Counted from the stretch's first letter, positions 28,101-53,900 are shown. The stretch: DNA of 64,000 bases from Monocercomonoides exilis PA203 (GCA_001643675.2 LSRY02000032.1:682001-746000); one strand, 5' to 3'. Numbers and translations are program-made. Notes: a model not told the origin generated them from the letters alone.

Positions 28101-29160
28101 ACAAATCTGCTCTTCATTGTGGATGTGTCATCACCCACTCCGAAGCAGCTGGCGTGCATGCCCCGCATCCAGTCGTGCCCTCTGTTTGCCATCGATTCAT
28201 TGTCACACACGTCATTCACACAGCAAACACTTCAACCTTCTTCTGTTAATGACTCTTCTTCTTCTGTCTCTTCTTCTTCTGCTTCTAATTCTTCCGCCGA
28301 CAAGGGAAAGACAGCATCTTCTGAACAGCAATCTTCTTCTTCTTCTTCCTCCTCCTCCTCATCTTCTTCAACATCACCAGCAAAAGAGCAATCGACTCAA
28401 AACAGCAAATTGCCAAAGAGGAGAACCGTTCGGGATCCACCAGATCTTCTTGCATTCACTTTTGTTCCATCGCCCAAAAACTATTCATCAAAGACAAACG
28501 TTCCGTTGAATGTGATTAGAATAATCACAACAACTGGGAGCATTGTGGATTATGACATTGACGTGTGCACACTTCTTATTATTCTTCTGTTTTGACATAT
28601 ATTTTTAAATGAATAAATTATTTCTTTCCTATTTGAACTAATTTTTGTGATTGCAAAATTTCACTTCCTTTATAGTCGAATATGTTCCACTTTTGGAATC
28701 CAAAGATATCAACTCAAACACCATTAGAAGAGCTCATCAGCAAAATGAAAAAATCGTTTGAAATAACTTTTATTTCTGATTTATAACTTTACCAAACTGA
28801 TTTATGATTAATCACTTAATGGAAAATTTCCATTTTTCATTATTTATCATTTTTCTATATTTGTGCTTTAGGATCCTTGGGTTTGAGTATCTTTCTCCTC
28901 TGGAAACGAAATCGTCTAAGTTTTTGCTATGGACATCAACCGAGCTTATTCTTGTGAGCTACCGTTCTCCTTTTGCAAAAACCAACCACTCAAATTCTTC
29001 CTCCAAAACCAAAGGAGAAATTGTAGTTATGACTCAATTCAAACAGCTGGTGAATGTGGTTGCTCTTCTCAATGGAGACATCCACATTGTCGAGCAGCCT
29101 TGGACAAAGGTTGTACAGGCGCTTCCTGATCCTATTCGCAAGCACGAATACGGAACTTAA
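25151..29160 (+). CDS. UTP4: U3 snoRNA-associated protein 4 (Utp4/cirhin), WD40 repeats with acidic insertions
   Basis: N-terminus MKIHRNRLIRWIPSAVHSIA...AVAREDGSIEIY; WD motifs GGAIWSIAVSP, IVSGDSCGRVIFW and HTHDV; C-terminus VEQPWTKVVQALPDPIRKHEYGT. Spread over several exons. Confidence 0.9.
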
Positions 29161-29859
29161 TTCAATTAACTTTTTCTTTTGAATGAAAGTTATATGGATG
29201 GAAGTCATGAAAAAAAAAAAACAAGGAAAATTATTATTTATGATTCAAAAGTTACAGCAGACGAGAAGACTTTTCAACGTGTAAAACACTGTTTTTTTGA
29301 GTTTAGTTCGTTCGTTTGCTTGTATCTAATATTCATTTAATCATAATCTTCTCATTTCAACATTCATTTCATTTCATTTCAAATATAAAAACAAAAACGA
29401 AAAGATGTTGCTAATAGCATAATATACAAGCGAAGAAAGGAGAGGCAGCATTTGAAATAGGTATTATTTTCCATTAAAAAAAAAGAGAAGAAATAATTTT
29501 GAGAAGTCCTTTCTTCAACCATTGGGGATAAACATTGGAAAACTTCAACAACAAAACTTCGAATAACTAAAAAGCTGATAACACACACAAGAATTTAACA
29601 AATAAAGCTTCAAAAGCTCCATTTTCAAGCAATGAAAAAATTTGTTACTCAGTTAAAAAGCACTTATATTCATTTAAATCATCGTCTTAATACTTTAAAA
29701 TCCACAAAGCATTAAATTTCTCGAATTATAATAAAAATTTATTTTTTTTGATAAAACAATCTTTTCGAAAAATTGAGACTTTAATTCACAATTCTCAAAA
29801 TTGGGAATAGAACTCAAATAAATGGTCTAAAACATTCCAAAAATTAAGAAGCCTTAAAA

Positions 29860-32800
29860 ATGAAAGTTGTCTCATTCGATTTATTCGGAGAAAAAGCTCT
29901 AAATGTATTTATTGATAAACTATTAATGCAATTTGGGATGCAAAGATCATCCCATTGCTTCGACTCTTAAACATGCAAAGATTATTGAAGGAAGAAGTCT
30001 GTCTACAGCGATTGTCTTGTTGCGCATATTGCTTTAAATATTTTATTATATTTGTTTATTTTTGTTGTATGATGCAAACATTTTAGAAATATTTTGCAGA
30101 GCCAGAAATCTTGAAGAGCCAAAGCATTATTGATGTTCTTCTTGCTCGTTCTTATTTATCAACTGATAAGTTAGCATTTATATATCTTGATGATGGAGAG
30201 CGTATTGGACAACAATTATCTTATTTGCAACTTACCGAGCGTGCAAAGTCGATTGGAGCATATATTCAAAAGAAAAAATTGACTCATCGTTGCTGCTTGA
30301 TGCTTTATCCACTCGAAAGACTTCATTTTGTTGAAGGTTTTATTTTCATTGAAAATATTTTTTTGCACTAGCACCTTTAATTCAAATTGTATTGACTTTT
30401 TTTTAATCTTCAACAATATTCAGCATTTTTCGGAGTGATTTTTGCAGGATGCATTGCAATTCCATGCTATCCTCCAGACCCTAGTCGTCTAAAGAGAACA
30501 ATGGCTCGTTTCAGAGCTATCATTGAAGATGCAAAAAGTCCGGTTGTTTGCACAACTCAAGCCATGATGGGAATGCTCAAACCAGTTATTGCTTCTATCC
30601 CTGAATTTCATGACATTGAAATTTTATGGATTGTGACAGACCAAATTGATAACTCTTATGGAAAAGATTGGGTTAATCCAAATGCATCTAAAGATAGTTT
30701 AGCTTTTCTTCAATACACTTCTGGCTCAACCGGAGTACCTAAAGGTGTTATGGTGACTCATGGAAACATCATTGCAAATGAAAAGATGATTATCAACTGT
30801 TTCCATCACAGTTATGATATGGGTTCAATTTGCTGGCTTCCATTGTATCACGATATGGGTCTTATTGGTCACGTGTTTGGTTCAATGTGGTCTGGAGCTC
30901 CTTGCTATCTTATGGCTCCAACAGATTTCTTGAAAAAGCCATATCGGTGGGTGAAGGCAATTTCAGATTATAAACTTTCGGCTACAGGAGGACCAAACTT
31001 TGGATATGAGCTTGTTGTGAGAAAAACTACACTTGAAGAAAGAAGCAAGCTTGATTTGTCACATTGGAAATTGGCGTATTGCGGATCAGAGCCAATTCAT
31101 CCAGCAGTTGTTGAGCGTTTCTTCAGCTACTTTGCTCCAGTGGGAATCAAAAGAGACATATTTATCCCTTGCTTTGGTTTGGCAGAAGCAACGTTGATTG
31201 TGACTGGACATGAACTTGGAACAGTTCCGCGTATGCTGATGCTTGATCAAGATAAGTTGGGAAAAGGAGAAGCAGAAATTCTGTACTTCCCACCTGGAAA
31301 AGAAGAGGAAACAGGAATGGAAGCAAAATCCTCAAGCGCATCTGCAGTAATTGTCGATAAAGACTCAAAGAAGAGAAATGTGAAGTATTTGATGACAGCA
31401 GGAAAAGTTGTATGGGCAGCAAACATTCGAATTGTTTCCACTGCACCACCTTTTGTTGCACTTCCTGAAGGAAAAGTCGGAGAAATATGGACGAACTCGC
31501 CATCAGTGACAATGGGATACTGGGGAAGAGAAGAGGCAACACGCGAAACATTCAGAGCATTTCTCGACAATGGTGAAGGTCCCTTCATGCGAACAGGAGA
31601 TTTGGGCTTTTTGAATGATGGAGAGCTTTTTGTGTGCGGAAGATTGAAGGATGTGATGATTATCGGAGGAAAGAACATCTATCCACAGGACATAGAAACA
31701 ACCGCTGAGAAAACAGTGGATGCTTTGAGAGCTGGTTGCTCGGCTTGCTTTTCGATTGATTGTGACGATGTGCGAAAGTGGACAGAAAAGCAGATTATCG
31801 AAGAGAAGAAGCTGAATTACCTGTCAGAAGAAGACGCCCAGAATTCTCTGTCTTCGTTGGCAATGCAAAAGAAATCTAGTTCCTCAGAACGAGTCATCTA
31901 TGTTGCAGAAACCAAGACTGATGTGCTTCAAGAGGAAGCGAAAGAGATTGTGCATGCAATCCTCGACAGCGTTTCCACACATCACGACCTGTCTCTCTAT
32001 GCCGTTGCACTGATCAAAGAGAGAACCATCTTGAAGACCACATCGGGCAAAATCCAGCGAAGAGGCACAAAAGCCGCCTTTCTTGATTTTGAGCTGGATT
32101 CTCACTACATTTGGCGCGAGGGGGTTCCACTTCCATCGACAACAGGAGGAAAAGACGGAGCATCCAAAGCCAGAACTGCATCAACATCATCTGCATCATC
32201 ATCTTCTTCTGATGGAAAAGCAGAAACAATGACAAGACAGAAAGCAGCACATCATCTGTCGCAGCCAACAGCTCGCAATGCTGGTTCTCAACAAGCAGGA
32301 GACGGGATGAGAGAGTCATCACCTTCACCAACACCTTCTCCATCTCTGTCGCCTTCGATGTCTCCCTCTCTTTTTGAGCCTGTTTATGGCCAGCAAGCAG
32401 CACTCGAGTCGGAATACGTGTCTTTCCTGCAGAAAAAGATAGCCGAGAGAAAAGGATGGGATCCGTCGACAATCGATTGTGAGGAGACGTTCTCTGCCTT
32501 TGGAATTGACTCAAAAGAAGGCTATGGGCTGATTGGAGAGATTGAAGAGCACACAAATGTGAGGTTGGACAACACTGTTTTGTTTGATTATCCAAACATC
32601 GGCTCGCTTGCAGCATATCTTGCTGGAAGGGCAATCGAGGAACAGGACGAAGAAGCAATAAAAGGCAGATTGGAAGCACAACGAGCAGAAAGAGAAGGAC
32701 ATGAGGGAAACAACGAAGAGATGAGATCAATCAACAGACCCGACGAGTGCAGTGCCAAACAACTTCTTTCTTCTGAGGTGTCAAAAGCACGAGAAGCACA

Positions 32801-35800
32801 ACAGAAGGAGTTGATTGCGATTGTCGGTATGAGCTGTCGTTTCCCCGGCGCCCACTCGACACAAGAGTTCTGGAACAACATCTGCAACGGAGTGGATTCC
32901 ATCACACGCGTGCCTTCCTCTCGTTGGGATGCTGATGCATTCTATTCGCCTGCCCCGTCCACACCTGGCAAGATGAACACACGAATGGGTGGCTTCATCG
33001 ACGGCATCGACCAGTTTGACAGGCGCTTCTTCGGCCTGTCAAACGAAGAGGCAGCAGCGATGGATCCGCAACAGCGCCAAGTTCTGGAGGTGGCTGTGGA
33101 AGCAATCGAAGATGCTGGAATAACACTCAATTCACTAACAGGCTCACCAACTGGTGTCTTTGTTGCAGCTTCTGGATCAAGCGACTATGCTGCAATGCAA
33201 CACAATCCTCATTCATATCAGATGATGGCCAACCAACACAATACCGATCCTTCCTCATCTGATTTGCCTGCTGCCAGCGCCAGCTATTCAGCAACAGGAT
33301 CTGCCATGTCCATTGTTGCAAACAGAATCTCATATCTTCTGGATCTCAGAGGCCCATCAGTTTCAATGGACACAGCTTGCTCATCTTCACTGGTTGCATT
33401 AGATGCAGCTGTCTCTGCTTTGCGTTCTGGACGATGCTCTGTTGCACTGACAGCAGGTGTGAATGTGATCTTGTCTCCGCTGGTGTCTGTGAATCTCTCT
33501 CAGGTTGGTTTCCTCTCACCAGACGGTCACTGCAAAGCATTTGATGCCTCTGCGAATGGCTATGTGCGGAGCGAAGGGTGTGGGTGCGTTGTGCTGAAGC
33601 CGCTGTCTGCTGCTCTGCGAGACGGTGACCGCATCTACGCGTGTGTGCGCTCGACAGCAGTCAACCAGGACGGCAAGTCGAATGGGCTGACTGCACCCAA
33701 CCCGAAGGCTCAGGAAGAGTGTCTGCGGGCAGCTGTGGCTGGGGCGTTGATGGACGGTGCAGCATTGCAGGTGATTGAGGCACACGGGACAGGCACAGCA
33801 CTCGGCGACCCTATCGAAGCCAAAGCGATTTCACACGTTTATTGCCCACCGAACAGAAATGCGAAGAATCCCCTGCTTGTAACTGCAGTGAAGTCGAACA
33901 TTGGCCACTCTGAAATTGCTGCTGGAATGGCTGGGCTGATCAAGACAGCGCTGTCTATCTACACAAAAGTGATTCCTGGTGTTGCCCTCTTCAGAGAATG
34001 CAACAACGCTATCGACGAAGAGCAGCTCAAAATACAGATCGTGAGAAAGACACAGCCATGGCCAAACACAAATGCATGCGGCATCCGATTTGCTGGTGTG
34101 TCCTCATTTGGATTTGGAGGTACCAATGCACACACTATTTTGCAATCGGTTCCAGTTGAAGCTTGCAGAGAAACCGAAGAAGATGCAGATGCTGTGACCG
34201 TTTCGAAGGCATCTGCAGCTGGAATGGTTGCATCACCACCACCTGAATCATCCTCATCTCCAAGTGGAAACGAGAATGAGAACTCACTTCCTGTTGTGCT
34301 TCCTCTGTCTGCAAAGACACAACCATCGCTGAAGCTGCTTATGTCTGCCTTCAAAAAGTACCTGAAGGAAATGGTACAGAACAACTACACATATTCTCTC
34401 TCATCGCTTGTCTCTCCTCTGTTCTTCAACCGCAATCACCATCCAGAGCGTGCAGCTGTCACTGGACGGAATGTGGAAGAGCTTGTCGGCTCGATCGATG
34501 CACTGCTCAGCGACAAGCCACCAAAAGTGGGCGGAGCAACAGGCAGAGCAGCACGAAATGTGGGTGCAGGCACAAAAGTTGGGTTTGTGTTTGTGGGACA
34601 AGGAACAGCATATCCACACATGTGCCAGGAGCTGATGAAAGTGGAAGGACCATTCAAAGACACGATGACAAAGATACAGAAATTGATTCTGGAAATCAAT
34701 CCTAAATTGGACATTTTGAAAGAGATGATGGCAGACAAAGAGAACAGCCGATTGAGCGCATCTACAGCAGTGTCACAGCCATGCATATTTGCAGTGGAGG
34801 TAGCACTGGCAGAGCTGGTGAAGTCGTGGGGTGTGGAGGCGTCGGCGGTGGTGGGGCATTCGATTGGGGAGATTGCAGCGAGTGTGGTGTGTGGAGCGAT
34901 GAGCATGGAGGAGGCAGTGCGTCTGGTGGTGATCCGTGGGGAGTGCATGAGCCGAGCGAAGGAAGGCGGGGCGATGGCGGCAGTGGAGATGTCAGTGGAG
35001 GAGGTGATGAAAGTGCTGGAGAAGTGTGGGGTGAAAGAGAGCTCGGTGACGATTGGGGCGTGGAACAGCCCAACATCGGTGACGCTGTCAGGAGAGACAG
35101 GAGCGATGGACAAAGTGCTTGGGGAGCTGGAGAAGACAGGAGTGTTCTGCCGGAAACTGGATGTGTCGTCAGCGTTCCACACGTGGTACATGGACTCGGC
35201 GCGGGAAGAGCTGGAGAAGCGACTGGGGGTTGTGAAGAACACACATGGGAAGATTGCGTTTGTGTCGACAGTGAGTGGGGAAGAGATTGATGGAGAAGAG
35301 CTGACTGGAGAGTATTGGGGAAAACAAATCAGATCTCAAGTCAAATTCTGCAAAGCTATCGAAACGATGGCAGAAAAAATGAAGATTCGCACTTTCATTG
35401 AAATTGGACCACATCCAGCACTCATACGAAACATTGCAAGTTGTGTAGAAGCAGCTGCCACTTCATCTGCTTCAGCATCAGCCACAATTATTCCAACTCT
35501 TATTCGAAATGAAGACTCATCAGTTGCCATCTCCACAACTATATGCCATCTTTACACCGCAGGAATCCTGCTTCCACAGGCTGTCAGCGCCATCTTTGGA
35601 ATTGTGCGCAAGCCATTCTATGAAACGCCGTTTATTGCATCTCATCCACTTCCACTCACTCCATGGAACCACGAGCGATGCTGGGTGGGCACAGTCTCAT
35701 CAGAACCCTTCAGAGCAGCTGCGCTTTTCTCAAAAACAGCAAGTGCAGTTGATCCACTGGCTGAAGATGCGTCATATGAAGAGCATTTTGTGCCTGCTGC

Positions 35801-38800
35801 ATTGCCAGCCACAAGAACAGGATCAAAGAAGGACAAGAATTTTGTTGTGCTGCTGCCGCAGAAGGAGATGACAGAGCCGATGAAGCATTTGGTCGAGCTG
35901 TTTGCCAGAAAAGGAGACAGAGTGGTGTTTGTTCTCCCACCAGCCACTACACATCACTCGTTCAGCAAATCAAACGAGAAAGGCAAGCAGGAAAAGAAAC
36001 AGGCAAAGATCGAAATTCTGACACCACAAACAAATGAAGTTGTGAGAAGCTATCTGTCTGGATTGAAGCCGAAAGGAAGATCAACTTCAGCTTCAGCATC
36101 ATCCTCTTCTTCTTCTGTTGTGGAATGCCCAGATCAGTTTCTGTTTCTGCAGAGCCCGTCGGATCCGTCTCGGTTGCCGACGCTGTTTGAGATGATGGGC
36201 ACACACTTCATCGGAGGAAGTGAAAGCGAAGGAGCATTCTCTGTGGTGTATGGCTGGGCACTCGACGGAGTATCGTCTGATTCGAGTGAGTTGAAAGCAC
36301 CCACATCAGCCGTGGCAGCCACCTTCCACACGTTTGTGTCGTCGTGGATTGCACACTTTTCGGGTGTGCCTCGTCTGTTTGTGCTGACAGCGGGTGTGGC
36401 ACCTGTGGACTGCACAGGAAATGCTCTGTCGAGCACAGCTGGATGCAACCACTTGACACGCGTGGCTGATCTACAGAAGGAGAAGACAGAAGACGCGAAG
36501 GATGTATCAAACACACTTTCTGAGGCGCCTCTGTGGGGATATGCAGGGAGCATTGGAGTTGAGTATCCAGACTCACACTGCAGTGTGGTGGATGTGAGTG
36601 CTGCACCTGAGGCATCAGCTGAGGATGTGGCTGCATTGTATGCTGAACTCCACTCAGCTACCGAGCAGAGCGAAGATCGAGTGGCCATCCGCGAAGGCAG
36701 CAGGCTGGTGGCAAGACTCAGAAAAGGAGCAGTGTTTGGGAGCGAGTTGGAGAATGAGGAGAATAACTTTGAGGCAGAAGAGCAGAAACAGCATGGAGCA
36801 AGGAAAGGAGAGAGCAGTGGGGCATATGTGATCACAGGTGGATTTGGTGGGTTTGGGCGAAGAGTGGCAGCGTTTCTGGCGTCGTCTGGTGCGACAGCGA
36901 TTGTTCTGGTGGATGTTGCGATTCCGCCCCCATCATCGCCAGCAGGCACAGCCGTTGCTACTCTGAAGTCGGCCTTCAGCCGGTGTAAATTCGATGCGAT
37001 TGCATGCGACGTGGGAGATGCACAGACGCTGCGGCAGAAGCTGATGGAGGTGCCATCCATTGGCCCCAAGCTGCGCATCCGCGGGGTGATGCACTGTGCA
37101 GGGCTGTTGTCGCAGAAGCTAATTGTGCAGTTCAGCGAGGAAGAAATGGCAAAGGTGATGCGTCCGAAGGTGGAAGGAGGATGGGCGCTGCACGAGATTG
37201 CGTTGGAATCTGCGCGTCTGTCGCCTTCTATGCTGAAGCACTTTGTGGTGTGGTCGTCGATCTCTGCTGTCGTTCCAACACACGGCGAGGCTGCATATGC
37301 ATCAGCCAATGCGTTTCTGGATGCGCTGACACAATACAGACGATCAATTGGACAGCCATCCACGTGTCTGAACTGGGGTGTGATTGGAGATGCAGGAATG
37401 ATCACCACACAGTCATCAGCCACGCTGAATGCGATGAAAGACATCGGACTTGGATCCACACCAATCGACACAGCAGTCAGAATTCTATCACACACACTTC
37501 AGTTCCCTCCAGCGAATGGGCAGCAGCAGGTGTATCGGCTGGACTGGCAGAAGTGGCTGGAGCTTCACCCAGCAACAAGAAGATACGATGAAGTGAAGCC
37601 ACGTCCAATATCATCAGCAGCCAGTCTGCTGGATGCATACGAGCAAGCAGGAGCATCCGATGCATCAGCCTCAGCATCTTCTGCATCTGCTTCGAGTTCA
37701 GCGTCTGCCTCAGGAGCAGCAGGAGGCATTGCACGAAGCTTTGAGGAGATCAAAGAGTGGCTGCTGGATGCAGTGAGCGAGCATCTGGGAATGAAAGCAG
37801 AGGAGATTTCGCCTGAAGAGCCGCTGATGCAGTATGGCCTGGACAGCATGGGAGTGATGTCACTGACACGGGCACTGTCGTCATATCTGGGTGTGACTAT
37901 CTCACCCACACTTTTGTATTCATACAGCACAGTCACACAGATCGCGTCACACTTTGCAGCTTCTGATGAAGAGCTGGCTCAATCATCTGCCTCTGCTTCA
38001 TCATCATCGACATCTGGTTCATCATCATCAATTTTGAAGAAGGAATCATCGCTTGGCAAGTCATCTCCACTCGACTCGTCTCTGGCGATTGTGGGGATGA
38101 GCTGCAGATATCCAGGCTCGTGCCACTCGCTGGCCGAGTTTTGGTCGTTCCTTCAGACGAAGAAGGATGGAGTGATTGCAGTGCGTCCAGACAGATGGGA
38201 CATCGAGACATACTTGGCAAAGGACAACGACACGCAGGCGCCTGGGAAGATGGTGTCTCCTTGTGTTGGGTCATACGACGAGATGGACAAGTTTGATCCA
38301 CACTTCTTTGGGATCTCTCCGAGGGAGGCAGAGCGGATGGACCCACAACAGCGTTTGGTGCTGGAGTGCAGCTGGGAGGCGCTGGAAGATGCAGGAATTG
38401 TGCCAGAGTCGCTGAGCGGGAGCGACACGGGGGTGTTTGTGGGCATCTCGTACTCAGACTACGGGATGATGCAGAACGGGAGCATCAATGATGTGAACCC
38501 GTACTCTTCGACAGGCGGGGCACTATGCATGGCAGCCAACAGGCTGTCGTATCTGCTTGATCTGCGCGGGCCGTCGGTGGCGTGTGACAGCGCGTGCTCG
38601 TCTTCGCTGTCTGCGCTGCATCTGGGCGCAAACTGCATCAAGCAGGACGAGTGCAGCCTGGCCATTGTGAGTGGTGTGAACTCAGTGCTGCTACCACACG
38701 GAGCCATTGCCCTGACGAAGACAAGTGCTCTGTCGCCAGAAGGAAAGTGCAAGACATTCGACTCCTCTGCCGATGGGTTTGTGCGTGCTGAGGGGTGTGG

Positions 38801-41800
38801 TGTGGTGATCCTGAAGCCTTTAGCACAGGCACTGCGCGATGGCGACCGCATCTATTCGACGATCCTGGCATCGCTGCTGAACCAGGACGGAAGAAGCAAT
38901 GGACTCACTGCACCGAACGGACTTGCACAGCAGGCGCTGCTGAAGGGTGTGTATGCGAAGGCAGGAATCGATCCGTCGGAGGTGTCGTTCATCGAGACAC
39001 ACGGAACAGGTACGAAGCTTGGCGATCCAGTGGAGGTGCAGTCGCTGTGTGCTGTGTTGTGCCAGAAGGGCAGAGACGCAGAGACAGCTCCACTGCATTT
39101 GGGATCAGTGAAGTCAAGGATTGGGCATTCAGAGTCAGCTGCTGGTGTGGCGTCGCTGATCAAAACGAGTCTGACGTTGTGGAAGAGGAAGCTGACACCG
39201 AATCTGCATGTGAAGGAGCCGAACGAGATGATTGCGTGGAAGGAGTATCCATGTCTGCATGTTCCGGTGGAGTGCAGCACACTCTATTCGCAGGAGTATC
39301 TGAAGCAGTTGAAGAAACAGCATCTCCCTCTTCCGCAATACGATGTGCCTGAATCGAGTGAGAAGAGCGACGAGGAAGAGGAAAGTGCAGCAGGAGAAGA
39401 CAAAGGCACTTTGTATGCAGGATTGTCTTCATTTGGATTTGGTGGGACGAATGCACACATTGTGGTGCAGAGCCCACTTTCGTCGTGGGAGCCAAAAAGA
39501 CACAGTGGGAAGCAGTCGAAACGGACACACTTTATGCTTCCTCTGTCAGCACGCTCAGACAGCGCATTGCAGAACCTGGCAGGGAAGTATCGCGACTACA
39601 TCTTGTCATCAGCATCTTTGAGGAAGATGAAGAAGAGCCAGGCGAAGGAAGAAGGAGAAAAGCGGATTGAATTCTTTGATGCACCTGCTGATCTCCAGGC
39701 TGCTGATTTGTGCTACACAGCTGCCTTCAGAAGACAGCATCTGTCGCATCGTGGATGCTTCTGTGCATCATCACTCGAAGAGCTGGCAGAAGAGCTCGAC
39801 CGCTTTGCACGACAGGCGCCTGCACCAGAAAGAGCGAAGGGAGAACCAGCAAAGACAGCCACTGTGACGGGAACGCTTCCTGTTTCAACAGTTCAGAGAC
39901 GTGTGGGATTTGTCTTCACTGGACAGGGATCTCATTGGCTTTCGATGGGAAAGAGATTGATTGAGAGCGAGCCTGTGGTGAAGAGGACAATTGCACAGAT
40001 AGATGCACTGGCACAACGTGTGTTTGCTTCATTGAAGGCAGAAGATCCAAAGAGGAAAGTATTTGAGTTCTCCATCATGGAGGAGCTGATGAATGAAGAT
40101 GAGAAGGAATCACACATGAAATCTACAGCAGTGTCGCAGCCATGCATATTTGCAGTGGAGGTAGCACTGGCAGAGCTGGTGAAGTCGTGGGGTGTGGAGG
40201 CGTCGGCGGTGGTGGGGCATTCGATTGGGGAGATTGCAGCGAGTGTGGTGTGTGGAGCGATGAGCATGGAGGAGGCAGTGCGTCTGGTGGTGATCCGTGG
40301 GGAGTGCATGAGCCGAGCGAAGGAAGGCGGGGCGATGGCGGCAGTGGAGATGTCAGTGGAGGAGGTGATGAAAGTGCTGGAGAAGTGTGGGGTGAAAGAG
40401 AGCTCGGTGACGATTGGGGCGTGGAACAGCCCAACATCGGTGACGCTGTCAGGAGAGACAGGAGCGATGGACAAAGTGCTTGGGGAGCTGGAGAAGACAG
40501 GAGTGTTCTGCCGGAAACTGGATGTGTCGTCAGCGTTCCACACGTGGTACATGGACTCGGCGCGGGAAGAGCTGGAGAAGCGACTGGGGGTTGTGAAGAA
40601 CACACATGGGAAGATTGCGTTTGTGTCGACAGTGAGTGGGGAAGAGATTGATGGAGAAGAGCTGACTGGAGAGTATTGGGGAAAACAAATCAGATCTCAA
40701 GTCAAATTCTCCAAGGCAATTGAGTATATGATCAAGTCACCACTTCACATCAACACATTCATCGAGCTTGGCCCACACACATCGCTGCTGGGCTATATTA
40801 AGCGTGTTGCTGCTGTGGCTTCATCAGCACCATCATCGATTCAGCTTGTGGGATCATTGCGCAAAGGAGAGAATGAAAGTCTGTCGATGCTGTCAGCATT
40901 GGGACATTTGTTCTGTGGAGGAATGAAGCCGAAGTGGAGCCAGGTGGGTGGATACGATGGAGTGTTTGTCCGAGCACCAACATATGCATGGGATCACGCG
41001 AGCTATTGGCTGAACGACTCGATCATCAGCCACTCAATCAGTGCGAGGATGTCACCAATCACAGGAAAGATGGTCAGCGGACGATCGAATTCAGCAGAGC
41101 TGGCCAAGATGCAGGGAATGGACTCACTCTCCATTCTGAACGGAACACCCACAACGCATCCACTTCTCCGCTTCCACACAGAATATGCAGGAGGCATCCA
41201 CATCTGGGAGACTCCGCTGAAGAAGGACGAGTCTGCTCGTCGCTTCATCTACGACCATTATGTGATTGGGGCAGTGCTTGTGCCTGGTGTGACATACATC
41301 GAGATGGGTCTTGGACTGTCAGCACTTCTCAATGGAGACGGACCGCACACAATCACAGACATCCGATTCGACAAGCCGCAGTTTTTGAACGTGGAAGATC
41401 CACGACACTACCAAATCCATCTGGTTCCAGTGCCAACCACATCAAGCGAGGCTGTTGGAACAATCGACATCTATTCACGTGCACCAGTTGCAGAAGACGA
41501 TGCCAAATCTTCTTCTGCCTCTGCTTCGGCATCATCATCATCAGAGAAATCAGGTGCCAGTGGTGAAGACAGCTCGAAGGTGCAGTGGACACATCACGCA
41601 TCGATGACAACACACTTTTTGAGAGAAGACGGTTGGTATTCTGCTCCCAAACAGGCCCAGCTGCAGAAGAAAGTTGATCTGAAGAAGCTGAAAGAGCGAT
41701 GCCCGAACGAGCTGACAAGAGCAGAGTATTACGACGAGCTGTTTGAGAGAGGACTGCAGCTGCGAGATCGGTTCAAGGGGGTGACGAATGTGTATTTGTC

Positions 41801-44800
41801 AGACACAGAATGCTTGGCAAGGATTCAGCTGGCAGAAGGAAACGACCGAAGAGGAATGCATCTGCACCCGACGATGCTGGACTCTTCGCTGCAGTGTGCA
41901 GGAGCAATGCTTCTGTTCCACCGGACGTTGACCGACAAGCGGGGCATCTACTTGCCAGTCTCGCTGGACAAACTGCATTCGTGGCGCCAGTGGCCAGATG
42001 TGGTGTTTGCGTGGGTGCGTCTGCTGTCCTTCCAAGAGAACTCGCTGCTGGTGGACATCACAGTGTATGACGAAGAGGGGCTGGAGGTGGCTGACATCCA
42101 CCACTTCCGCTGCAGATACGTGGAGGACACACGAAATGTGGAGGACGACATGTATAACGTGATCTGGACAGAAAGCTTGCTGAAGGCAGAGGACGAGATT
42201 AAGCACAAGGAAGCAGAGGATGAAGACGGAAATGCCGAAGAAAGAGAGAAAGGAGATGATGGTGAGATAGAGAAGATTGTGCCAGAGGGAGAGAAGAAAG
42301 CGAAGGAAAGCTATGTTGTGCTGCTGTGCGGCGACGAAGAGACTCCACAGAACAAAAGAGTGAATCGACTGGCAAAAGCGCTGACAGAAAGCGGATTCGC
42401 TGTGTATAGAATATATTTCAGTGAAAATGGAGCCGGATTTGATGGAAAGAAGAAGATCGCTCGGGTGAGGATGGTGGAGAAAGAAGACTACGAAAAAGCG
42501 CTGACACAAATTGCAGAGGCTGCTTCGAAATCTGGACGAAATGTTTGTGCAGCCATCATTCATGGAGCATTGCTGAATGATGAGACACTTCTTGCAGCTG
42601 AAGGCGCAACAGAAGCTACACTTCACAAAGTTCAATATGATGGATGCTTGTCTGCGCTTCAGATTGTGCAGTCCATAATGACTCAAACTGCTCCTCCTCG
42701 TCTGTTTATTCTGACAGCAGGAGCACATGATATCAAGTGCAGAAACAATGAAGCAGCAGCACTTGTTCAACCAGGTGCGTTCTCTATGTGGGGCTTTGGA
42801 GGAGTTGTGCAGAGCGAATGCCCGACACTGCGTGCAACGTTGATTGACTTCACCAACACCGGAAAGGACGAACTGGACGAAGAAGAAGCTAAAACATTTG
42901 CACAGCTGGTGACAGTTGGCTCGCTTCAACAGAATGTGATTGCATCGATTGCAGCAGCAGACAGTGAAGCGTTGAGAGAGGAAGAAAGTTCATCAGCATC
43001 GAATGAAAAGAAAGAAACAGCCAACAACGGAACAGCATCATCACCTGCAATGCTTGCACTCGAACAGAATGTTGCTCTCTCGCACAATCGTGTCTTTGTG
43101 GATCGAATTGCAAAGGCACAACGTCCAGTTATTCCAATTTCAACAGAAATGGCTGGATTCGATTCACCGCTAGCATGGAGACTGGAGATTGGCAAGCCAG
43201 GCAATCTGCAGACTCTCCGTGCTGTGGAGATTCCTCCAATTTCAGCAGATAAATGCGATCCAGTTACACACAGACGAAACCCAGAAGCTGAAGAGCTGGA
43301 GCTAAAGGTGTATGCAGTTGGAGTGAACTTCCGAGATGTTCTGAAGTCGATGGGGCTGTATCCAGCAGAATTTGACGAGACACTTTATTTGGGAGCTGAA
43401 TGCTCAGGTATTGTGACAAAGGTTGGAAAGGATGTGAAGAGCGTGAAAGTGGGTGATCGTGTTGTTGTTTGTGCATCTTCGTGCTTTGCGTCATATGTCA
43501 TTGCGAAGGAGGCCTACACAGCTGTAATTCCAGAGAACATCTCGTTTGAAGAGGCTGCATCGCTTCTGGGTCCGTTTTTGACCGCACATTACGGACTGGT
43601 GACTGAAGCTCGCATCAAAAAGGGAGAAAAAGTGCTGGTGCATCTGGGATCTGGTGGTGTTGGTATGGCAGCGATCATCATCTGCAACTACTTTGGATGC
43701 GAGGTGTTTACCACAGCTGGGTCGCCAAAGAAACAAGAAGTTGTGACGAAACCTCCATTCAACGTGAAGCCTGAAAACGTGTTCAGCTCTCGAACACTGG
43801 CATTTGTGGATGGAATTCGTGAGAGGACAAACGGAAGAGGAGTGGATGTGGTGTTGAACTCACTGACTGGTGAAGGGCTGGAAGAAGGCTTCAGATTGTT
43901 GGCACCACGCGGACGATTTGTGGAGATTGGCAAAAGAGACATTTACGATAATTCAAGAATCGGAATGCAACCATTTGCTGAGAACTGCACATTTATTGGA
44001 GTTGCAATGGACGATTTATTTGGAGATGACGAGGAGGTTGGATCAGCTGTCATGAAAGAAGCAATGGAACTGTTTGCAACAAAAGCTTACACTCCAATTC
44101 CATACATTGCATATCCAATAAGCGATGTGACGTCCGCTTTCTTGCTGATGGCTGGAGCAAAGCACATTGGAAAGATTGTGTTGACGTTGCATGATGCTCC
44201 TGCTATTCCTGTGGAAATGCGTCCAATTCGCTCTCTGACTGCGAAGGAGGATGTGGATGACGGTGCATTCGTTGTGACAGGAGGATTGGGTGGCCTTGGC
44301 CAAGCTCTTCTTCGATGGCTGGCTCAGCGAGGAGCCACACAGCTGGCTGTTCTGGAGATGCGAAGTGAAGAAGAGATGAGAGAAAGAGACAAGACAAACA
44401 CGATTGGTCGGTGCTTGGACTCTCTTCGTCACCACGGATGCCGAGTGGAGGTGTTTGTGACAGATGTGTCAGACAAAGCGAAGTGCAAGGCAGCAGTTGA
44501 TGCTGCACGAAAATCATTTGGAAAGATTGTTGGAGTGTTCCATCTGGCTGGCATCATCGACGACTGCCTCATCGACCAGCTGGATGCCAAGCGATTCCTG
44601 CGTGTGTGTGCCCCTAAGATTTCAGGAGGATGGAATCTGCACGAAGCAACACTCCCCGACAAGCAGACACTGCGATACTTTGTGCTGTTTTCTTCGGTTG
44701 CAGCTATTCTTGGACAGCCAGGACAGACAAATTATGCTGCCGCAAACTCATTCTTGAACGGTCTTGCACAATATCGAAGATCTGCTGGTCTGCCTGTGAC

Positions 44801-46373
44801 ATGTCTGAATTGGGGTCCGTTGAGTGGAGCTGGAATGATGGCGCGAAATGAGGAGCTGACAAAAGCAACAGAAGCACAAGGCATCCACATGATCACAATC
44901 AAACAGATGCTGACTGCAATGCACATCATCATTGACAGAGATCTGAAGCTGCACAAAGAACCAGCAAAGAAAGAGAAAGGAGAGAAGAGTGAAGAGACAG
45001 CAGAAAGGAATTGCTCAGAGTGGTCGACTGGAGTGCTGCAGGTTGACTGGGAAAGGTGGTTCAGCCGCAACCCATTTGCTGCGAGATCACCTCGTTTCTC
45101 GTATCTTTCATCGAAGTCTGCGCAGGCAAGCCATTCAGCCGCGCTGAAGCTGAGGAAAGCGGTGCTGAGTGAGCAGAACGAAGAGAAGCAAATAGCAATG
45201 CTGGGAGAGGTGCTGACACGACTGGTGAGCGGAGTGACTGGACTGGCTGAATCAGCAATTCCGGCAGAGCGACCTTTGAACGAAATGGGCTTGGATTCGA
45301 TGGTTGCAGTTGAATTGAGAGCACGGATGGACCAGGAGATCGGATATTCAGTTCCAATTGTGACATTCGTGCAGGGTGCATCTGTGAAGGCTGTGTGCGA
45401 AAACATTCTGGAGCAGATGAAAGGCTCTTCACAGTCTTCATCTTCCTCTGCCTCCGCTTCATCATCTGCTTCATCATCTTCTGCTTCGAGCAGCACAGGT
45501 TCCAAGAGCGAAGCGATGGTGGAGCTGACGAAGGGATCAGGAGCAGTCTATGCTATTGTGTGCCAAGCAGGTGGAGTGGCATCTTCAATGAACGGACTTG
45601 CAAATCATATGACACAAATGCTGAAGAGAGGCGTAGTGGCATTTGAAGATCCATCACTTTATGGAACGGCAGCTCCATTCAAGTCAGTGAAGGAAATGGC
45701 CACGCAATACATCGCACTGCTGAAGGAGAAGCAACCGAAAGGCCCATATTCATTGTGCGGATTCTCATTTGGTGGCTTTGTGGCACAAGAAATGGCACAT
45801 CAGCTGATCGAGAAAGGCGAAGAGGTGGCAACACTGTCGCTGGTGGATCCTCCATCACCATCTCTGTGTGGTGCAAAGACAACGAGAGGAAGATCAGAGA
45901 CATGTGCCGTGCTGTTGATGGCAGCTGGAGTGAAGGGAACAGCAAAGGTGAACGACAGCGTGGCAAAGCGAGTGATGAAGCGGTTGAGCGAAGTGAAGGA
46001 GGACAGCAGCGAGGCAAGATGGAGCGTGTGTGTGGAAGAGCTGAAGAAGATTGGAGTGATCACAAGGCCAGGAGAGGAAACAGTGCTGAAGAAGACTTGG
46101 ACAGTTATTGCCAACGAGATTGAACTGCTTCCATCACATCACCCAGGTATCATTGCTGGAAGCAGCGGATCAACAACTAAGTGCGTATTGTACCAGCCGC
46201 AGCAGAACAAGAAGTTTGTGAAGGATTTGTTGCTTCTGGACGAGGCAGAGAGCGAGTGGCGCAAGGTTATTCCATCTCTTCAGGCTGTGCCTATTCCTGG
46301 AGATCATTGGACAATCATCGGTGCAGAACTCATGGATGAGACAGCTGATCGGCTGGCTAAGGCTGAACAATGA
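29860..46373 (+). CDS. Bimodular type I polyketide synthase with FAAL loading module: FAAL-ACP-KS-AT-KR-ACP-KS-AT-DH-ER-KR-ACP-TE (~5,414 aa)
   Basis: Exons 29860-29904, 30087-30336 and 30424-46373 splice in frame. FAAL: FLQYTSGSTGVPKGV, WLPLYHDMGLIG, FGLAEATL, RTGDLG, KTTSGKIQR. ACP serines: GIDS, GLDS, GLDS. KS: DTACSSS/DSACSSS, HGTGT and IGHSE (twice). AT: GHSIGE and SAFH (twice). DH: DHYVIGAVLVPG and HPTMLDSSLQ. ER: NFRDV and GSGGVG. KR: TGGFGGFG...YASAN and TGGLGGLG...IIDD...YAAAN. TE: GFSFGG...GDHW. Confidence 0.95.
34760..35349 (+). repeat. 590-bp direct repeat, copy 1 (core of AT domain, module 1)
   Basis: Matches 40121-40710 at offset 5361 with one mismatch seen (34775 A vs 40136 G). 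The off-frame 169-aa ORFs over both copies are identical. Confidence 0.95.
40121..40710 (+). repeat. 590-bp direct repeat, copy 2 (core of AT domain, module 2)
   Basis: Near-identical to 34760-35349. Confidence 0.95.
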
Positions 46374-47971: not shown

Positions 47972-50900
47972 TCAAACATCTGTTACAGTGTCCTCCTTGT
48001 TACTGTCTTTTTGATTTGCCAAATCATCGTTATCTAAATCTTTTTGTAAAGGCTTCTTCTTCTTCTTTCTTTTTCTTTTTCTTCGCACAGAAGGAGAGTC
48101 AGCATCTCCAACCTTTGAATCAAACTCTTCCCCAACAATAAAGTCTTCTTCCATCGTATTGCGAGATCTTCCTGAGCCATCCTTGCCTCTGGACGTTATT
48201 ATAACATGGGACGTGCGATACGGAGAATCTGACCCATTCCTCTCCTTCAGTAGTGGATAAAGCATCGCTCTTTCTTCTTTGTCCATGCTGCTGTCATCTT
48301 CCTCATACTCTGAGCCATCTTCATCGTAGCCTTCTTCTTCTCCTCCGTCTTCATGCTGCACATCAGCACCTCCCATCTCTTCTCTCTCCAGATCTGACAG
48401 TCGAACTTGGTGCTGGTGCATCTCATCTCCTCCTTTATGCTCATTTGCCATTGAAACATCATTCTCGTTCTCTGCGTAATCCATCTCTTCTGCCCCTCTT
48501 CTCCTCATTTTCCTTCCAGAATTCCGCTGCTGCTCGTCCCTTCCTTCTGCTTTTCTCTCCTTTGCAGCGTGTGCCAGTCTGCGCGGAGTCATCCAGTTGA
48601 GAAAGTTGTGCAGTCCAGTCTCCATCATTGAGGTGTCGTCGTTCATCTCCTCCACCAGCGCTGTAGCTGCAGCAGATGTGGGCGTGTCAAACGTTGACAG
48701 TGCCTGTGCATTTCTCCGAGTGCGCGAAGGAGTAGTGAAAATTGGGATGTTGGGATTAGTCTGCGAGAGATGGAACGAGTGGGAGACAGGCAGTGCGTGC
48801 ATTGAAGGTGACAGTGATCTTTGATGGGACGATGAATTTGTGAGAGAAGGCGTAAGAACAGAGCCATCGACTGATATCTCCATGCTTGGCACCAAGCCAT
48901 TTTTGCTGCCAGAGCGAATTTCGTTTCTGCCTCGAGAAGGAGTCAGCAGCATCACTGGCTCATTCCGCTCAATTATCCCTTGTGACAGCGGAGGTGTGAC
49001 AATCATTTGCCTCCTATCGTTTTCTCTCTCTTTCCTTCTGGCTGCTTCACTTCCTCCGTCTGTCATTTCAGCAGAGGAAGAGCGTGTTGGAGTCGGATGC
49101 TTTGAGCGATTGCCCTTCGAATGACTGTGTGACGAAGGCGATGAGTGTGCTGAATGGTCTGCATTGTCGTCAGTAAACGAGTCAATGACAGGAAGAAGGC
49201 GCGATGTTCGAAGTGTGTTGGTTCCGAGCCGAAATGAAGGAGAAAAAATAGTCTGCGGAATATCTTCACCGTTGTTTGTGTCTGAATGAACGGGAGTGAT
49301 TGGACGAGACGGTGGCTTAGAGCCAGAATGTGACTCATTGGAAAAGGACAATTCTGGTGAGAGCTTTGATGAAGTGGAAGACGATGCGTTTGCAGACGAG
49401 CCTGAAAATGAAGAGGACAAGGAAGTCAGAGACGGGTTGAACGATTTTGGTGAGAGATTTGTGTCTGATAAGCTGGAAAGGTGTTGATGGAGCGGTGAAT
49501 TGAACGAGTCGATGTCTGAGAGCTGCGAGTTTGGCGAGGGTGGGATTGGTGTCAGAGGAGCATGTGTAGATAAGAAATGACCAGAAGGTGAAGAAAGTGT
49601 GGATGTTGGAGGAGGATACGGAAGCGTTGGAGAGTCAAACATTGTATTCATCATCCGGTTGGGGCTCAGAAAAGGTGTCGCATTTGACGTGTAAGTTGCA
49701 TTGGAGAAATTGTTGGATGAAAGCATTGAAGATGTTGATGGAGTCTGCTGCACTGGATATCCCAATGAAAATGCGTCTGATGTGTTGAGCATGCCCGTTC
49801 CATTGTTGTTCACTCTGGGTGTGAATGAGGTGGATGGGGAGAACAGAAGGAGCGGACGATTTGAGGTGAAAGACGGGGAAACGGTGCCGAAGGATGATGG
49901 AGATGTTGGAGATGTTGGAGGAGTGATCGCATGGAACGAACCATATTCGTTAGAATCGGAATAATATGATGGAATCGACGTAGTCAGTCCAGTAGAAGAG
50001 TATATCGTAGATGGCTGTGTGGGATGGAAACCAGGTGTTGTATCAGTCATTGATCTTGAATTGAAAACAGATGGAGTATAGGTAAATGCTGGAGTGGTGT
50101 GATAAAAGTCCTGATGAAGTGATAATGACTGGACCGATGCTGTTTCTGTGTATCCGAAAGGATACTGCAGTGAAGAATGCGAAGAAGGTGTGTCAGAAAC
50201 AGAAGAAAGCATTCCTGCTGGTATGATTGATGGAGATGTTGATGATTCATTTGAAGGGGCAATTGTGATTGGCGGAAGAGGAGCAGGCAGAATTGGATGT
50301 GGAACGACTGGGATAAGTGCAGGTGTTGTGATGGAAGGCGACAAAGTCGAAGACTGCTGGCTGAGTGTGGTCTGGCTGTCTCCAGTTACAGTTGGTGATG
50401 GCTGTATTGAAGGTGTGAATCCAGAAGGTACACCATCATAGTAGTGTTTGAGTGAGGAGGTCGATGGAGAAGAGAAGTTTCTTGTGCGAGGCGTTGAGTC
50501 TACCAATAATCCGTCACTTTGTGCTGTGGGGAAGGAAGGCATGGCTGAGACGGTTGGGACAGTTGAGATGACTGTGCTTGATGCTTCTGGTGAAGACGCA
50601 AAAGCAGCAAGGAAAATGTTCATCAGCTTGACTGAATCGAACGAAGAAAGAGAGCATGTTTCGAAGTCAGATGCATCTGTGCTTGAGCTCTCATCTGCAG
50701 ACAGCTCAGCTGCGAGTGCCTCTTCCTCAGCTATTCGCTCATCGCGTGGAATCTTCGACAGATCATTCGAATCCGCATTCGCACTCGATGAAGCCTCAAC
50801 ATTCTGGTCTTCCTCCATTTTGATGTCTATGTGTGCATCGGTGGTTTTTATTTCTTCTTCCATTTGAATCGATGCTTCGCTTTTGACAAATGTTTCTGCT

Positions 50901-53900
50901 TCATCAGAATTTTCGTTGTTTTCTTCAATCCCCTTTTCATATTCATTCAGAATCTCCTCAGAAAGCGGAAGGTCGTTTTCCAGCAGCTCCTCGACATCGT
51001 CGCAGTCTTCGTCAAATCCCACCGGAAAGTCAGAAATAACCTCGTCTTCGATTCCGGCAAACACAGCTGACTCAGAAAAAGGACTGCCCACTTCTGCATC
51101 TTCATCCCTGGCAGCATCGGCTGATGCTGCACTTTGTGTGATTCCAGTCTCTTCTTCACCAGATTTCTTGTCTTCTACATCCATTCCACCCTCAGCTGCT
51201 TTCGAATGCTCCTCATCTTCTGCTTCCTCTGCCTCTTCTGCCTCTTCTGCCTCTTCTTCATCGTCCTCAGTGCACTCAGCCAGAAGCAGGCTCATCTTGT
51301 GCTTCATCCGGATGGCATCCCACAGATCATACAGCACATTCATCACCTGCTGCAGACGCGCCAAGACGCCATCGAGCGAAAAGTTGATCTGCGGCAGCGG
51401 CTGAAACAGCGAAGAAGAGCTGCCACTCGAAGCGAACTGTGCGTGGGAAGAAGGAGAGCGAGGGGAAGACGGGGCAGAGTCGAAGGAGCCTTCTCGTTTG
51501 ACTACTGATGGTGTGGAAGGGAAGGTCTGTGTAATCAGAGGAGGATGGGTGAGGCCAGCGATTCGCGCCTGTGGGTGCTCAATGGACGGTCCATTTGAGG
51601 TGTTTGCAGTAGAGGAAGAGGAGGAAGAGGAAGAGGAAAACGAGGAAGAAGAAGAAGAAGAAGAAGAAAGCAAAGAAGTTGATGAGACTTCAGAGTTTTC
51701 TTCTTCTGAATTGTTCACACTGCGCGAAAGCTTCGATTTTCTGCGTTCACTGAGGACAGGTCCCTTTCCGAGAGCCAATCCTTCAGTGCTCATTGAATAC
51801 TGCCCTTCATCAAACTCGTCAATTCGCTCCATCCTCTGCATAGAGCTTCTCTGCATCATTCTTTTCCTTCTTCTTTCTTCTCTTTCTCGCTGCTTCATCT
51901 TCCTCTTCGCCATCTTCCTCTTCTTTGCTGTGTCTTTTATTCGGTCCTTCCTCTTTATCCTGTCTCTCAGCTCCTTCAGCACTTCTCTTCTTGCTCTTTC
52001 TCTTTCGTTGTGCCATAAAACGGCTGCAAAGTCAGCATCAGGTAGGACAGCAATGACAAGCAAGGAGAACAGAGGTATCTTGTCATACAGCACAGACTCC
52101 AGTGTGTGGAGTGGGATGAATGGAAGAAGCGGATCTGTCGACTTGAGCAAATAAGAGTTCTGAGACTCCACTGAACTTTGCTGTGATGTAATATTTCCAG
52201 AGGGAAAAGAATCGTCCACCATTTTGTTAGAGCCATCGAGTGTGTTGATGAGCTCATTATGTTCTTCACTTCCTCCATTCTCATCCAACACAATCACTCG
52301 TGTGATTGTTCCAGAGACTGGAGGTGTGACAGGCGATGGCAGTGTGTCCTCGACATCTGCATCAAGAAGAGTGTATCTTCGTTGGAGAATGGATGATTGA
52401 GGAGAAGGCGCAACAGGGGCGTTTGTGTCTATTTCCATTGAAGATGAGTCAGAAGTGATGGATGGAGGAGAGTGTGCTAAAGATGATTGGTCTGTCATTG
52501 ATTGGTGATGCTGCTGCTGCTGCTGTTGTGAATCAAAACTTTCTGTTTGATTTTGCTTTTGGTCAGCAAAAGTGTCAGTAAATGGCTGATTTGTTGATTG
52601 GGCATTTGGATTGTTGTTTGATGAAGAAGAAATTTCTTGTGAAATGTTTGAAGGTTGCTGATTGATCGAAGATGAGGCAGAAGAAGAAGAAGAAGAAGAG
52701 GCTGAAGTGCTTTGAGATAGAGGAGAAGGAGCAGAAGGAGGAAGCACTGAATTTGATGGAAGTGAATTGGATGTTGTTGAATTGTTGTTTGAATTGAATT
52801 GATCAGAAGTCGAAGAAGTCGAAACAGTATTTTGCACAGAAAGTGGAGAAGAAGAGGAGGAGGAAAGAGAAGAAGAAGAAGAAGAAAGTGAAGAAATAGC
52901 AGAAGAAAGATGTGTTCCGCTTTGTATCAGTTTAAGCTGGGCCTTTGCGTAGTCATTCAGTTGAGCAGTTGAAGAGGAAGACAACGAAGAAGGAAAAGAT
53001 GAATGAAAAGAAGGAGACACAACAGAATCTTTAGAAGAAGAAGAACGAGAAGGAGAAGAAGATGCTTGTTCTGATGAAAGTGCATTTGAATTTTGTGGAA
53101 GAGAAGTTGCAGACGAGCCAAACGAAGAGGCAGAAGAAGAAAGACTGAGCTGAGGGAAAGAAGGAGAAGGCATAGCTTGTGGAGAAGAGGAAGGAGGCTG
53201 AGGCGGAGGCGGAGGAAAAGCAGCAAAAGAAGGGAAGATCTGCTGGGGAACAGGAAACTGGCTCATGTAATTGGACTGCTGCTGCCCTTGTTGTGTTTGT
53301 GTGGCAGGGTTTCCTTGGAGAGAGGCAGGCGAATAAGGAAACGGAGTGGCTGTCAGAGCAGAAAGCGCTATCGAAGGCGATGTCTGATGTGATGCTGCTG
53401 TGTTTGCGGCTTCTTGATCACCGTCGCTCAGCTGAGGCAGAGCATTCACATCTGAAATTTGGCTGTTTGCCTGTTTTTTTCTCTCTCTCTCTTCTCTTTC
53501 TCTCTCCATCCGCTCCATTTCCCTCTGCCGCTTCATTTTTTTCTCTGTTTCTTTCCGCTCAAAGCGCTCGACCTCGTTCCACTCCTCTTCAAAGCTCTGA
53601 ATGGCGCTTTCAGACCCGAAACGTGAAAGGGCATCGCGAAGAAAGAGGCAGCGGACGGTGAAGAAGAAAGAGAGGGAATCTCGTTGGAATGCAGCATATG
53701 CAGATGAAAGAGAGGCTGGCTTTTGTGTTTGGAGTGGGATTTGCTGCTTTGTTTTTGTTGAGGAAGAAGAAGAAGAAGAAATCTTATTCTGTTCCATCGA
53801 ATTGGATGAACTTCCAAGTGTAGATATTGTTTGCTTGCTTGCTGAACACGCAGAATTTTCATTTCTCGTTCTGTCAGAAGATGTCTGTGCGTTTGAGATG

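Follow-up and report, generated by a model that had tools for sequence, protein, structure and literature searches.

The first half of Ols, the cyanobacterial olefin synthase of Picosynechococcus/Synechococcus sp. PCC 7002, has the order FAAL-ACP-KS-AT-KR-ACP (fatty acyl-AMP ligase, acyl carrier protein, ketosynthase, acyltransferase, ketoreductase) and makes a beta-hydroxy intermediate from a fatty acid, while its end is a sulfotransferase-thioesterase (TE) pair that decarboxylates the chain to a terminal alkene. In mycobacteria the FAAL is a protein of its own, and the systems yield mycolates or phthiocerols. In Cryptosporidium parvum, CpFAS1 and CpPKS1 are primed by an acyl-ligase-ACP loading unit that uses a pre-made fatty acid. 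These two enzymes have 3 and 7 modules, respectively, and release their products by a C-terminal reductase; CpFAS1, the open reading frame (ORF) of which is intronless, is a predicted fatty-acyl elongase (PMC2995488, PMC6568194). The gene described here lies in a 64,000-nt stretch of the Monocercomonoides exilis PA203 assembly (GCA_001643675.2, LSRY02000032.1:682001-746000; hereafter the window, to which positions refer unless a contig is named), and it is a transcribed nuclear gene of an oxymonad, probably functional, specifying a FAAL-primed, two-module cis-AT type I polyketide synthase (PKS). An earlier note on this DNA had already described a nuclear, intron-containing, FAAL-primed bimodular cis-AT PKS, and Pfam matches, PDB matches and spliced RNA all agree with that description. 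M. exilis is the model eukaryote without mitochondria. The published reconstruction of its metabolism reports no short-chain fatty-acid synthesis and does not mention polyketide synthases (PMC6759080).

The gene (nt 29973-46373, +) encodes 5,407 aa by count of codons over three exons, and contains an open frame of 5,312 codons without a stop (30435-46373, +), so that the single gene of about 5,400 aa proposed earlier is upheld. A Pfam scan gives 13 domains in the order FAAL-ACP-KS-AT-KR-ACP-KS-AT-DH-ER-KR-ACP-TE (DH, dehydratase; ER, enoylreductase), in which KS-AT-KR-ACP makes up module 1 and KS-AT-DH-ER-KR-ACP-TE module 2. The matches comprise AMP-binding, three PP-binding, two KS (ketoacyl-synt, 3e-89 for KS1 and 3e-82 for KS2), two AT (Acyl_transf_1, 1.4e-61 and 4.6e-61 for the two in-line ATs), a DH (PKS_DH_N and PS-DH), two KR and Thioesterase, the ER being detected as ADH_N, ADH_zinc_N and ADH_zinc_N_2. 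Every domain listed in the earlier note was recovered by Pfam, but that list omitted the ER, which is relevant to the product. No sulfotransferase family is found among the Pfam matches of the gene, nor any NAD-binding reductase, the C-terminus being a thioesterase (PF00975), and even at E <= 1 Pfam detects neither DH nor ER in the 413 aa that separate AT1 from KR1.

The catalytic motifs, also noted previously as intact, are all present (Table 1), including both KS triads, the AT and carrier serines, the DH motifs, both KR tyrosines and the TE triad. An HAFH as opposed to a YASH motif in an AT signals the choice of extender, and the Phe of the SAFH motif seen in both ATs suggests a malonyl substrate. 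The IIDD motif of KR2 is B-type-like, as expected ahead of a DH.

The loading domain was compared with solved structures in the PDB, where FAALs take all of the 15 best places (E 1e-104 to 1e-47) and acyl-CoA ligases score at most 1e-19, 30 or more orders of magnitude weaker. The best match (about 1e-104) is 7R7E-G, the FAAL of the PCC 7002 PKS (PMC11837247). It is followed in the ranking by LpFAAL, FadD32, FadD23, EcFAAL and FadD28, and among enzyme-specific models the NCBIfam FAAL models come top, at 1e-98 to 1e-65. In the sequence alignment, an unaligned stretch of 49 residues (ORF aa 270-319) lies opposite residues 347-369 of the PCC 7002 FAAL, where the FAAL-specific insertion is expected, and may correspond to it. 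Exon 2 alone has no Pfam match, and was assigned to the FAAL because it aligns to exon 2 of a paralogue on the same contig (54% identity) and to the N-terminus of an orthologue from the oxymonad Blattamonas nauphoetae (both described below). The loading carrier, ACP0, is found within about 100 residues of the FAAL and is followed by KS1; acyl transfer from the FAAL to ACP0 is predicted.

Five RNA runs from two studies match the gene, and assembled contigs of four of them (X1-X3 and X5) were aligned to nt 29000-34900. Intron 2 (30337-30423) is removed in contigs of three runs (X1, X2, X3; shorter side 248 nt), exactly as it had been predicted. Intron 1 had been placed at 29905-30086, and of this the acceptor stands, as position 30087 is exactly where contigs of each of the four runs start or are joined, but the donor does not. 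The only donor seen is 29996|GT, in one X3 contig with 23 nt on its upstream side, and the loose end of an X2 contig spells 29987-29996, matching the end of exon 1. Intron 1 is therefore 29997-30086, and with this donor the frame opens at ATG 29973. The first exon proposed earlier (29860-29904) has no RNA contig coverage at all and is replaced by an exon at 29973-29996. The layout of the paralogue is the same, with ATGCAAGAACCCAGACTC|GTATGT about 95 nt before exon 2 and a short exon 1 beginning with MQ, and intron 2 is kept there in position and phase (phase 1, after ...FIE). The Blattamonas nauphoetae protein is likewise short at the N-terminus, and starts MDERLKSSIPEPEILK.

The gene is transcribed, and spliced over its 5' 5 kb. 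The spliced contigs come from three runs of one study, and the second study contributes fragments at 95-99% identity. The latter belong to run X5 (study P2, a metatranscriptome), cover parts of 30087-32891 and show few substitutions, which suggests that a related strain expresses the gene in a natural sample. Contigs of three runs also show a skip of 168 nt at 34064-34233, with AA..CA ends and sides of 30 nt. It falls in the KS1-AT1 linker, where the paralogues differ by indels, and was probably produced by the assembler as a cross-join, not by splicing.

Table 1. Exons, introns and domains of the FAAL-PKS gene (window coordinates).
Feature	Position (nt)	Strand	Motifs and evidence
Exon 1	29973-29996	+	ATG 29973; MQRLLKEE, then KYFAEPEILK...; RNA joint 29996->30087
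Intron 1	29997-30086	+	90 nt, GT..AG; RNA contigs
Exon 2 (N-terminal part of FAAL)	30087-30336	+	RNA contig starts or joints at 30087 in X1-X3, X5
Intron 2 (phase 1)	30337-30423	+	87 nt, GT..AG; spliced out in X1, X2, X3
Exon 3	30424-46373	+	stop TGA at 46371-46373
FAAL, loading domain (interrupted by intron 2)	30087-32114	+	AMP-binding 1.4e-43; PDB; NCBIfam
ACP0, loading carrier	32427-32621	+	Ser in GIDSK; PP-binding 6e-12
KS1	32808-33983	+	Cys-His-His intact: DTACSSS, HGTGT, NIGHS; Pfam and motifs
AT1, malonyl-like	34584-35561	+	GHSIGE, SAFH; Pfam and motifs
KR1	36819-37385	+	TGGFGGFG, YASAN, without LDD; Pfam and motifs
ACP1	37755-37949	+	Ser in GLDSM; Pfam and motif
KS2	38079-39212	+	DSACSSS, HGTGT, RIGHS; Pfam and motifs
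AT2	39909-40925	+	GHSIGE, SAFH; Pfam and motifs
DH	41157-42131	+	HYVIGAVLVP, DSSLQ; Pfam and motifs
ER	43287-44183	+	GSGGVG NADPH site; ADH_N, ADH_zinc_N, ADH_zinc_N_2; motif
KR2	44262-44825	+	IIDD (B-type-like), YAAAN; Pfam and motifs
ACP2	45210-45401	+	Ser in GLDSM; Pfam and motif
TE	45564-46322	+	Ser in GFSFG, an Asp, His in GDH; Thioesterase 1.5e-18; motifs

The view that this is a stand-alone system could not be maintained, as eight KS matches are spread over six type I PKS genes in the genome, and one of these six is a near-twin lying on the contig of the present gene. This paralogue (C28:1017376-1033086, about 300 kb downstream) has the same 13 domains and a last exon of 5,237 codons. 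Nucleotide identity between the two genes is 65-70% over FAAL-ACP0 (dS about 2 for the FAAL), 91-92% over KS1 where gap-free (dS 0.47) and 94-100% from AT1 to TE apart from one 300-nt block at 84% (dS 0.09-0.14). The jump occurs at the first KS1 codons (window 32823), after which identity is 91-99% where gap-free up to the stop codon and collapses just beyond it; the flanks of the two genes do not align. Gene conversion would explain this pattern, as would replacement of the loader in one of the copies. The loader of the twin (FAAL-ACP0 and partly KS1) appears to be old and divergent, with KS1 to TE apparently kept nearly identical, and the pair suggests two starter specificities that may feed one extension chemistry. 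The ratio dN/dS is 0.02-0.19 in every catalytic region, and the gene is under purifying selection. All variant letters in the RNA contigs (15 of 15) are those of the twin, so both copies are transcribed.

A second case of local identity is found within the gene itself. Starting about 22 residues ahead of the active-site Ser, the protein segments of AT1 and AT2 that were compared (nt 34791-35234 and 40152-40604) are identical to their ends, against 70% identity over the whole domains, which suggests intragenic homogenisation between the modules.

The third FAAL-PKS gene (C5, about 1334955-1347969, -) has the order FAAL-ACP-KS-AT-DH-KR, followed by a class I/II aminotransferase that is C-terminal and alpha-oxoamine-synthase-like. 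A GT..AG intron connects its ORFs of 2,393 and 1,935 codons, and a sphingoid-base-like product is conceivable from this domain set. The other three genes (C2:1835460-1846376, C31:868444-879042 and C23:881480-892495) encode about 3,500-3,700 aa each. Their KS domains are 89-92% identical to one another and form a clade apart from those of the FAAL-PKSs. In the genes on C2 and C31, KS-AT-DH-methyltransferase-ER-KR-ACP precedes a second, C-terminal acyltransferase, an order presumably shared by the gene on C23. These three are fatty acid synthase (FAS)-like or highly reducing PKS-like, and could bear on the published lack of short-chain fatty-acid synthesis.

The earlier note proposed a search of the genome for an Sfp-type phosphopantetheinyl transferase (PPTase) and for a source of malonyl-coenzyme A (malonyl-CoA). 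One Sfp-type PPTase is present on C51, a 349-aa ORF with AASDHPPT_N and ACPS domains that is the single PF01648 match in the genome and matches human AASDHPPT (4e-29) and Sfp (2e-10) in the PDB. All ten PP-binding matches in the genome, counts here being lower bounds, fall inside the six PKS genes. M. exilis is reported to be without mitochondria, and hence without a mitochondrial ACP (PMC8767320). A PPTase with no other visible client therefore argues that the PKSs are used. For malonyl-CoA a likely source was found as well. Carboxyl_trans matches mark three ORFs of about 1,270 aa, at C6:1440148-1443957, C6 about 1309813 and C5 about 1149584, and the one that was scanned (C6:1440148-1443957) has Carboxyl_trans, ACCA, HMGL-like, PYC_OADA and Biotin_lipoyl domains. 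In other anaerobic protists (Entamoeba, Giardia and Trichomonas) the same domain set belongs to an acetyl-CoA carboxylase/pyruvate carboxylase fusion that acts as a transcarboxylase and makes malonyl-CoA, and these fusions are the likely source. Elongases that use malonyl-CoA have been reported in M. exilis (PMC6759080).

The best full-length homologue is a Blattamonas nauphoetae protein (P0005, 5,117 aa), which bears out the oxymonad host suggested from the window, almost certainly Monocercomonoides exilis. This orthologue is colinear over all 13 domains, with 41-73% identity per domain, and its database name, 'putative Long-chain-fatty-acid--AMP ligase FadD26', covers the first domain only. 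Module 1 of the Blattamonas protein has no DH or ER match, so that its KR-only state is conserved. All other relatives found are bacterial or metagenomic, at 29-48% identity in the wider searches and about 50% between single KS domains. A protein search with KS1-AT1, which ranks by score summed over many KS domains, gave a list filled with giant bacterial PKSs of at most 46% identity.

In a maximum likelihood tree of 72 KS domains, a KS phylogeny being among the checks recommended for this gene, the seven oxymonad FAAL-PKS KSs form one clade among bacterial KSs (UFBoot 97, SH-aLRT 95). The clade takes in both KSs of each bimodular gene (two genes in M. exilis, one in Blattamonas), together with the KS of the third M. 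exilis FAAL-PKS. KS1 and KS2 fall in separate sub-clades with both genera in each, and therefore the second module was duplicated before the genera split. The oxymonad FAAL-PKS family thus appears to predate the Monocercomonoides/Blattamonas split. It seems to have been acquired once, long ago, from a bacterial-type PKS lineage; the donor, and even the direction of transfer, are presumed.

If the domains are used in the order in which they are encoded, the FAAL would adenylate a free fatty acid (Cn) and load it on ACP0 without CoA. KS1 and AT1 would then add one malonyl unit, with KR1 leaving the beta-hydroxyl (the 3-hydroxyacyl stage), and KS2 and AT2 would add a second, to be reduced fully by KR2, DH and ER. 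The TE would free a 5-hydroxy C(n+4) fatty acid or cyclise it to a six-membered delta-lactone, and one or other of these is the predicted product. The carriers would be activated by the single Sfp-type PPTase, and malonyl-CoA would probably come from the acetyl-CoA carboxylase/pyruvate-carboxylase-type transcarboxylase fusions. The substrate, the single use of each module and the biological role are likewise predictions.

A number of points weigh against this reading. The AT motif is SAFH where the canonical form is HAFH, and KR1, of predicted activity, lacks both the LDD motif and the Trp signature by which its stereochemistry would be read. Exceptions to colinearity are common, iteration and module skipping among them. 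The RNA evidence spans nt 29000-34900 of a 16-kb gene and consists of assembled contigs, which give neither levels nor ends. The KS tree was drawn from database matches in two length windows and includes four non-oxymonad eukaryotic KSs, all of one protein. The group that branches next to the oxymonad KS clade has 74/78 support and changed between the quick and the careful trees, so no bacterial donor is named.

Since the published analysis of M. exilis detected no short-chain fatty-acid synthesis and only elongases of the endoplasmic reticulum (PMC6759080), the host would depend on primer fatty acids, and the enzyme might instead be a fatty-acyl elongase, a CpFAS1-like FAS that lengthens scavenged long-chain fatty acids for membrane lipids, perhaps iteratively and with the hydroxyl of module 1 lost or irrelevant. 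CpFAS1 likewise places reducing modules after an acyl-ligase-ACP loader (PMC2995488), and module 2 here is fully reducing. This is nevertheless an improbable explanation, as a saturated product is not expected of a first module that is KR-only, with no DH or ER at E <= 1 in the 413 aa concerned, and that is conserved in this state in Blattamonas; release, moreover, is by a TE and not by a C-terminal reductase as in CpFAS1. An ordinary type I FAS, which the earlier note saw as the description that might overturn its own, was rejected on the two KS-AT sets, the FAAL-ACP loader and the absence of DH and ER from module 1.

No product is known, and papers on metamonad PKS pathways were not found in the literature searches, as would also be the case if the gene, once transferred long ago, were now decaying, still transcribed but productless. 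That is very improbable given 5,312 codons without a stop, catalytic motifs that are intact throughout, dN/dS values of 0.02-0.19 against the paralogue, conservation of all domains in Blattamonas, and the retention of a PPTase whose visible clients are PKS genes only.

The setting of the gene is eukaryotic. It sits on a contig of 1.19 Mb, with UTP4 directly upstream (E 3e-30 against human UTP4) and a kinesin gene further upstream, which, together with the spliced introns, confirms the nuclear location inferred at the outset from the UTP4 neighbour. The G+C content of the PKS exon (50-54%) exceeds that of the intergenic DNA (about 30%) and is the same as in the nearby kinesin exon at 14-16 kb. 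A search for close relatives across 185,579 prokaryotic species gave a single irrelevant match (24% identity) and shows only that there is no near-identical prokaryotic sequence. A bacterial contaminant or a chimeric assembly, to which the bacterial and metagenomic affinities (about 50% between single KS domains, 29-48% in wider searches) and the raised G+C might point, is ruled out by the spliced transcripts and can be dismissed, since the two GT..AG introns removed in RNA are conserved in position in the paralogue, the gene is embedded among UTP4, kinesin and transposon ORFs, a second oxymonad genome carries the orthologue, neighbouring eukaryotic exons have equal G+C, and no close prokaryotic relative was found among the species scanned.

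No tailoring genes were seen beside the PKS gene. Directly downstream, and convergent with it, is an open frame of 2,866 codons (47972-56572, -) that has no Pfam match, and no homologue of it was seen next to the paralogue. Beyond this are two transposase-like ORFs, 57634-58665 (-; DDE_Tnp_IS1595, 3.9e-19) and 59676-60566 (-; DDE_1, 2.9e-12).

Returning to the FAAL-primed two-module PKS, a wider scenario is possible, and is offered tentatively. Oxymonads may have inherited and expanded a lineage-specific set of FAAL-primed megasynthases that would make hydroxy-lipids, lactones or sphingoid-like bases, needed by the amitochondriate cell, from scavenged fatty acids. In M. exilis this family would consist of the two bimodular, TE-terminated genes and the aminotransferase-fused FAAL-PKS, the twins being maintained as a 'two loaders, one chassis' pair through gene conversion with its limit where KS1 begins. 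If true, this would be a case of natural starter-unit diversification by recombination in a eukaryote.

Literature searches for PKSs in Monocercomonoides, Preaxostyla or metamonads found one paper (PMC12820801) and no characterisation of the pathway. In this survey of the FAAL family, from 2026, 'Preaxostyla (FAAL-PKS)' is listed, and M. exilis and P. pyriformis are pointed out as organisms with FAALs (PMC12820801). The novelty claimed earlier holds to the extent that no paper characterising the pathway was found, but the orthologue is annotated in GenBank and, with the survey just cited, FAAL-PKS genes in Preaxostyla are already on record; the value of the locus is accordingly organismal and evolutionary rather than mechanistic. 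New in the current study are a revised gene model, evidence that the gene is expressed and constrained, the complete architecture with its ER, the six-gene family, the mosaic twin, the argument from PPTase clients and the single-clade KS result. Six intact type I megasynthase genes (two of them shown to be transcribed), a PPTase and a likely malonyl-CoA supply point to a specialised branch in the lipid metabolism of M. exilis. The bimodular FAAL-PKS yields a concrete, testable product prediction, and the mosaic gene pair is a natural experiment on how loader specificity can diverge while the extension modules are homogenised.

Among known systems, Ols of PCC 7002 provides the best solved-structure match to the FAAL domain (about 1e-104), and up to ACP1 the present enzyme would follow the logic of the first half of Ols. 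The M. exilis protein differs from the Ols/CurM type in having no sulfotransferase match and, after ACP1 and before the TE, a complete, fully reducing second module. CpFAS1 and CpPKS1 are, like the present enzyme, giant single-polypeptide modular megasynthases of a eukaryote, but, compared by description, the M. exilis gene differs in its two modules, KR-only first module, two introns and TE release. In the mycobacterial FadD26-PpsA-E and FadD32-Pks13 systems a FAAL hands a long-chain fatty acid to a type I PKS, as predicted here. FadD32, FadD23 and FadD28 are strong PDB sequence matches to the FAAL domain, and the best NCBIfam match of the TE is the Pks13 model, far below its cut-off; in M. 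exilis, however, the FAAL is fused and the set of modules is different. The order KS-AT-DH-ER-KR-ACP-TE of module 2 is shared with animal type I FAS, but the latter is a single iterative module, loaded from acetyl-CoA by its malonyl/acetyltransferase (MAT), whereas here a FAAL-ACP loader and a KR-only module lie upstream. The M. exilis enzyme is a modular cis-AT type I PKS with a fused FAAL loader, a known enzyme type in an unusual host.

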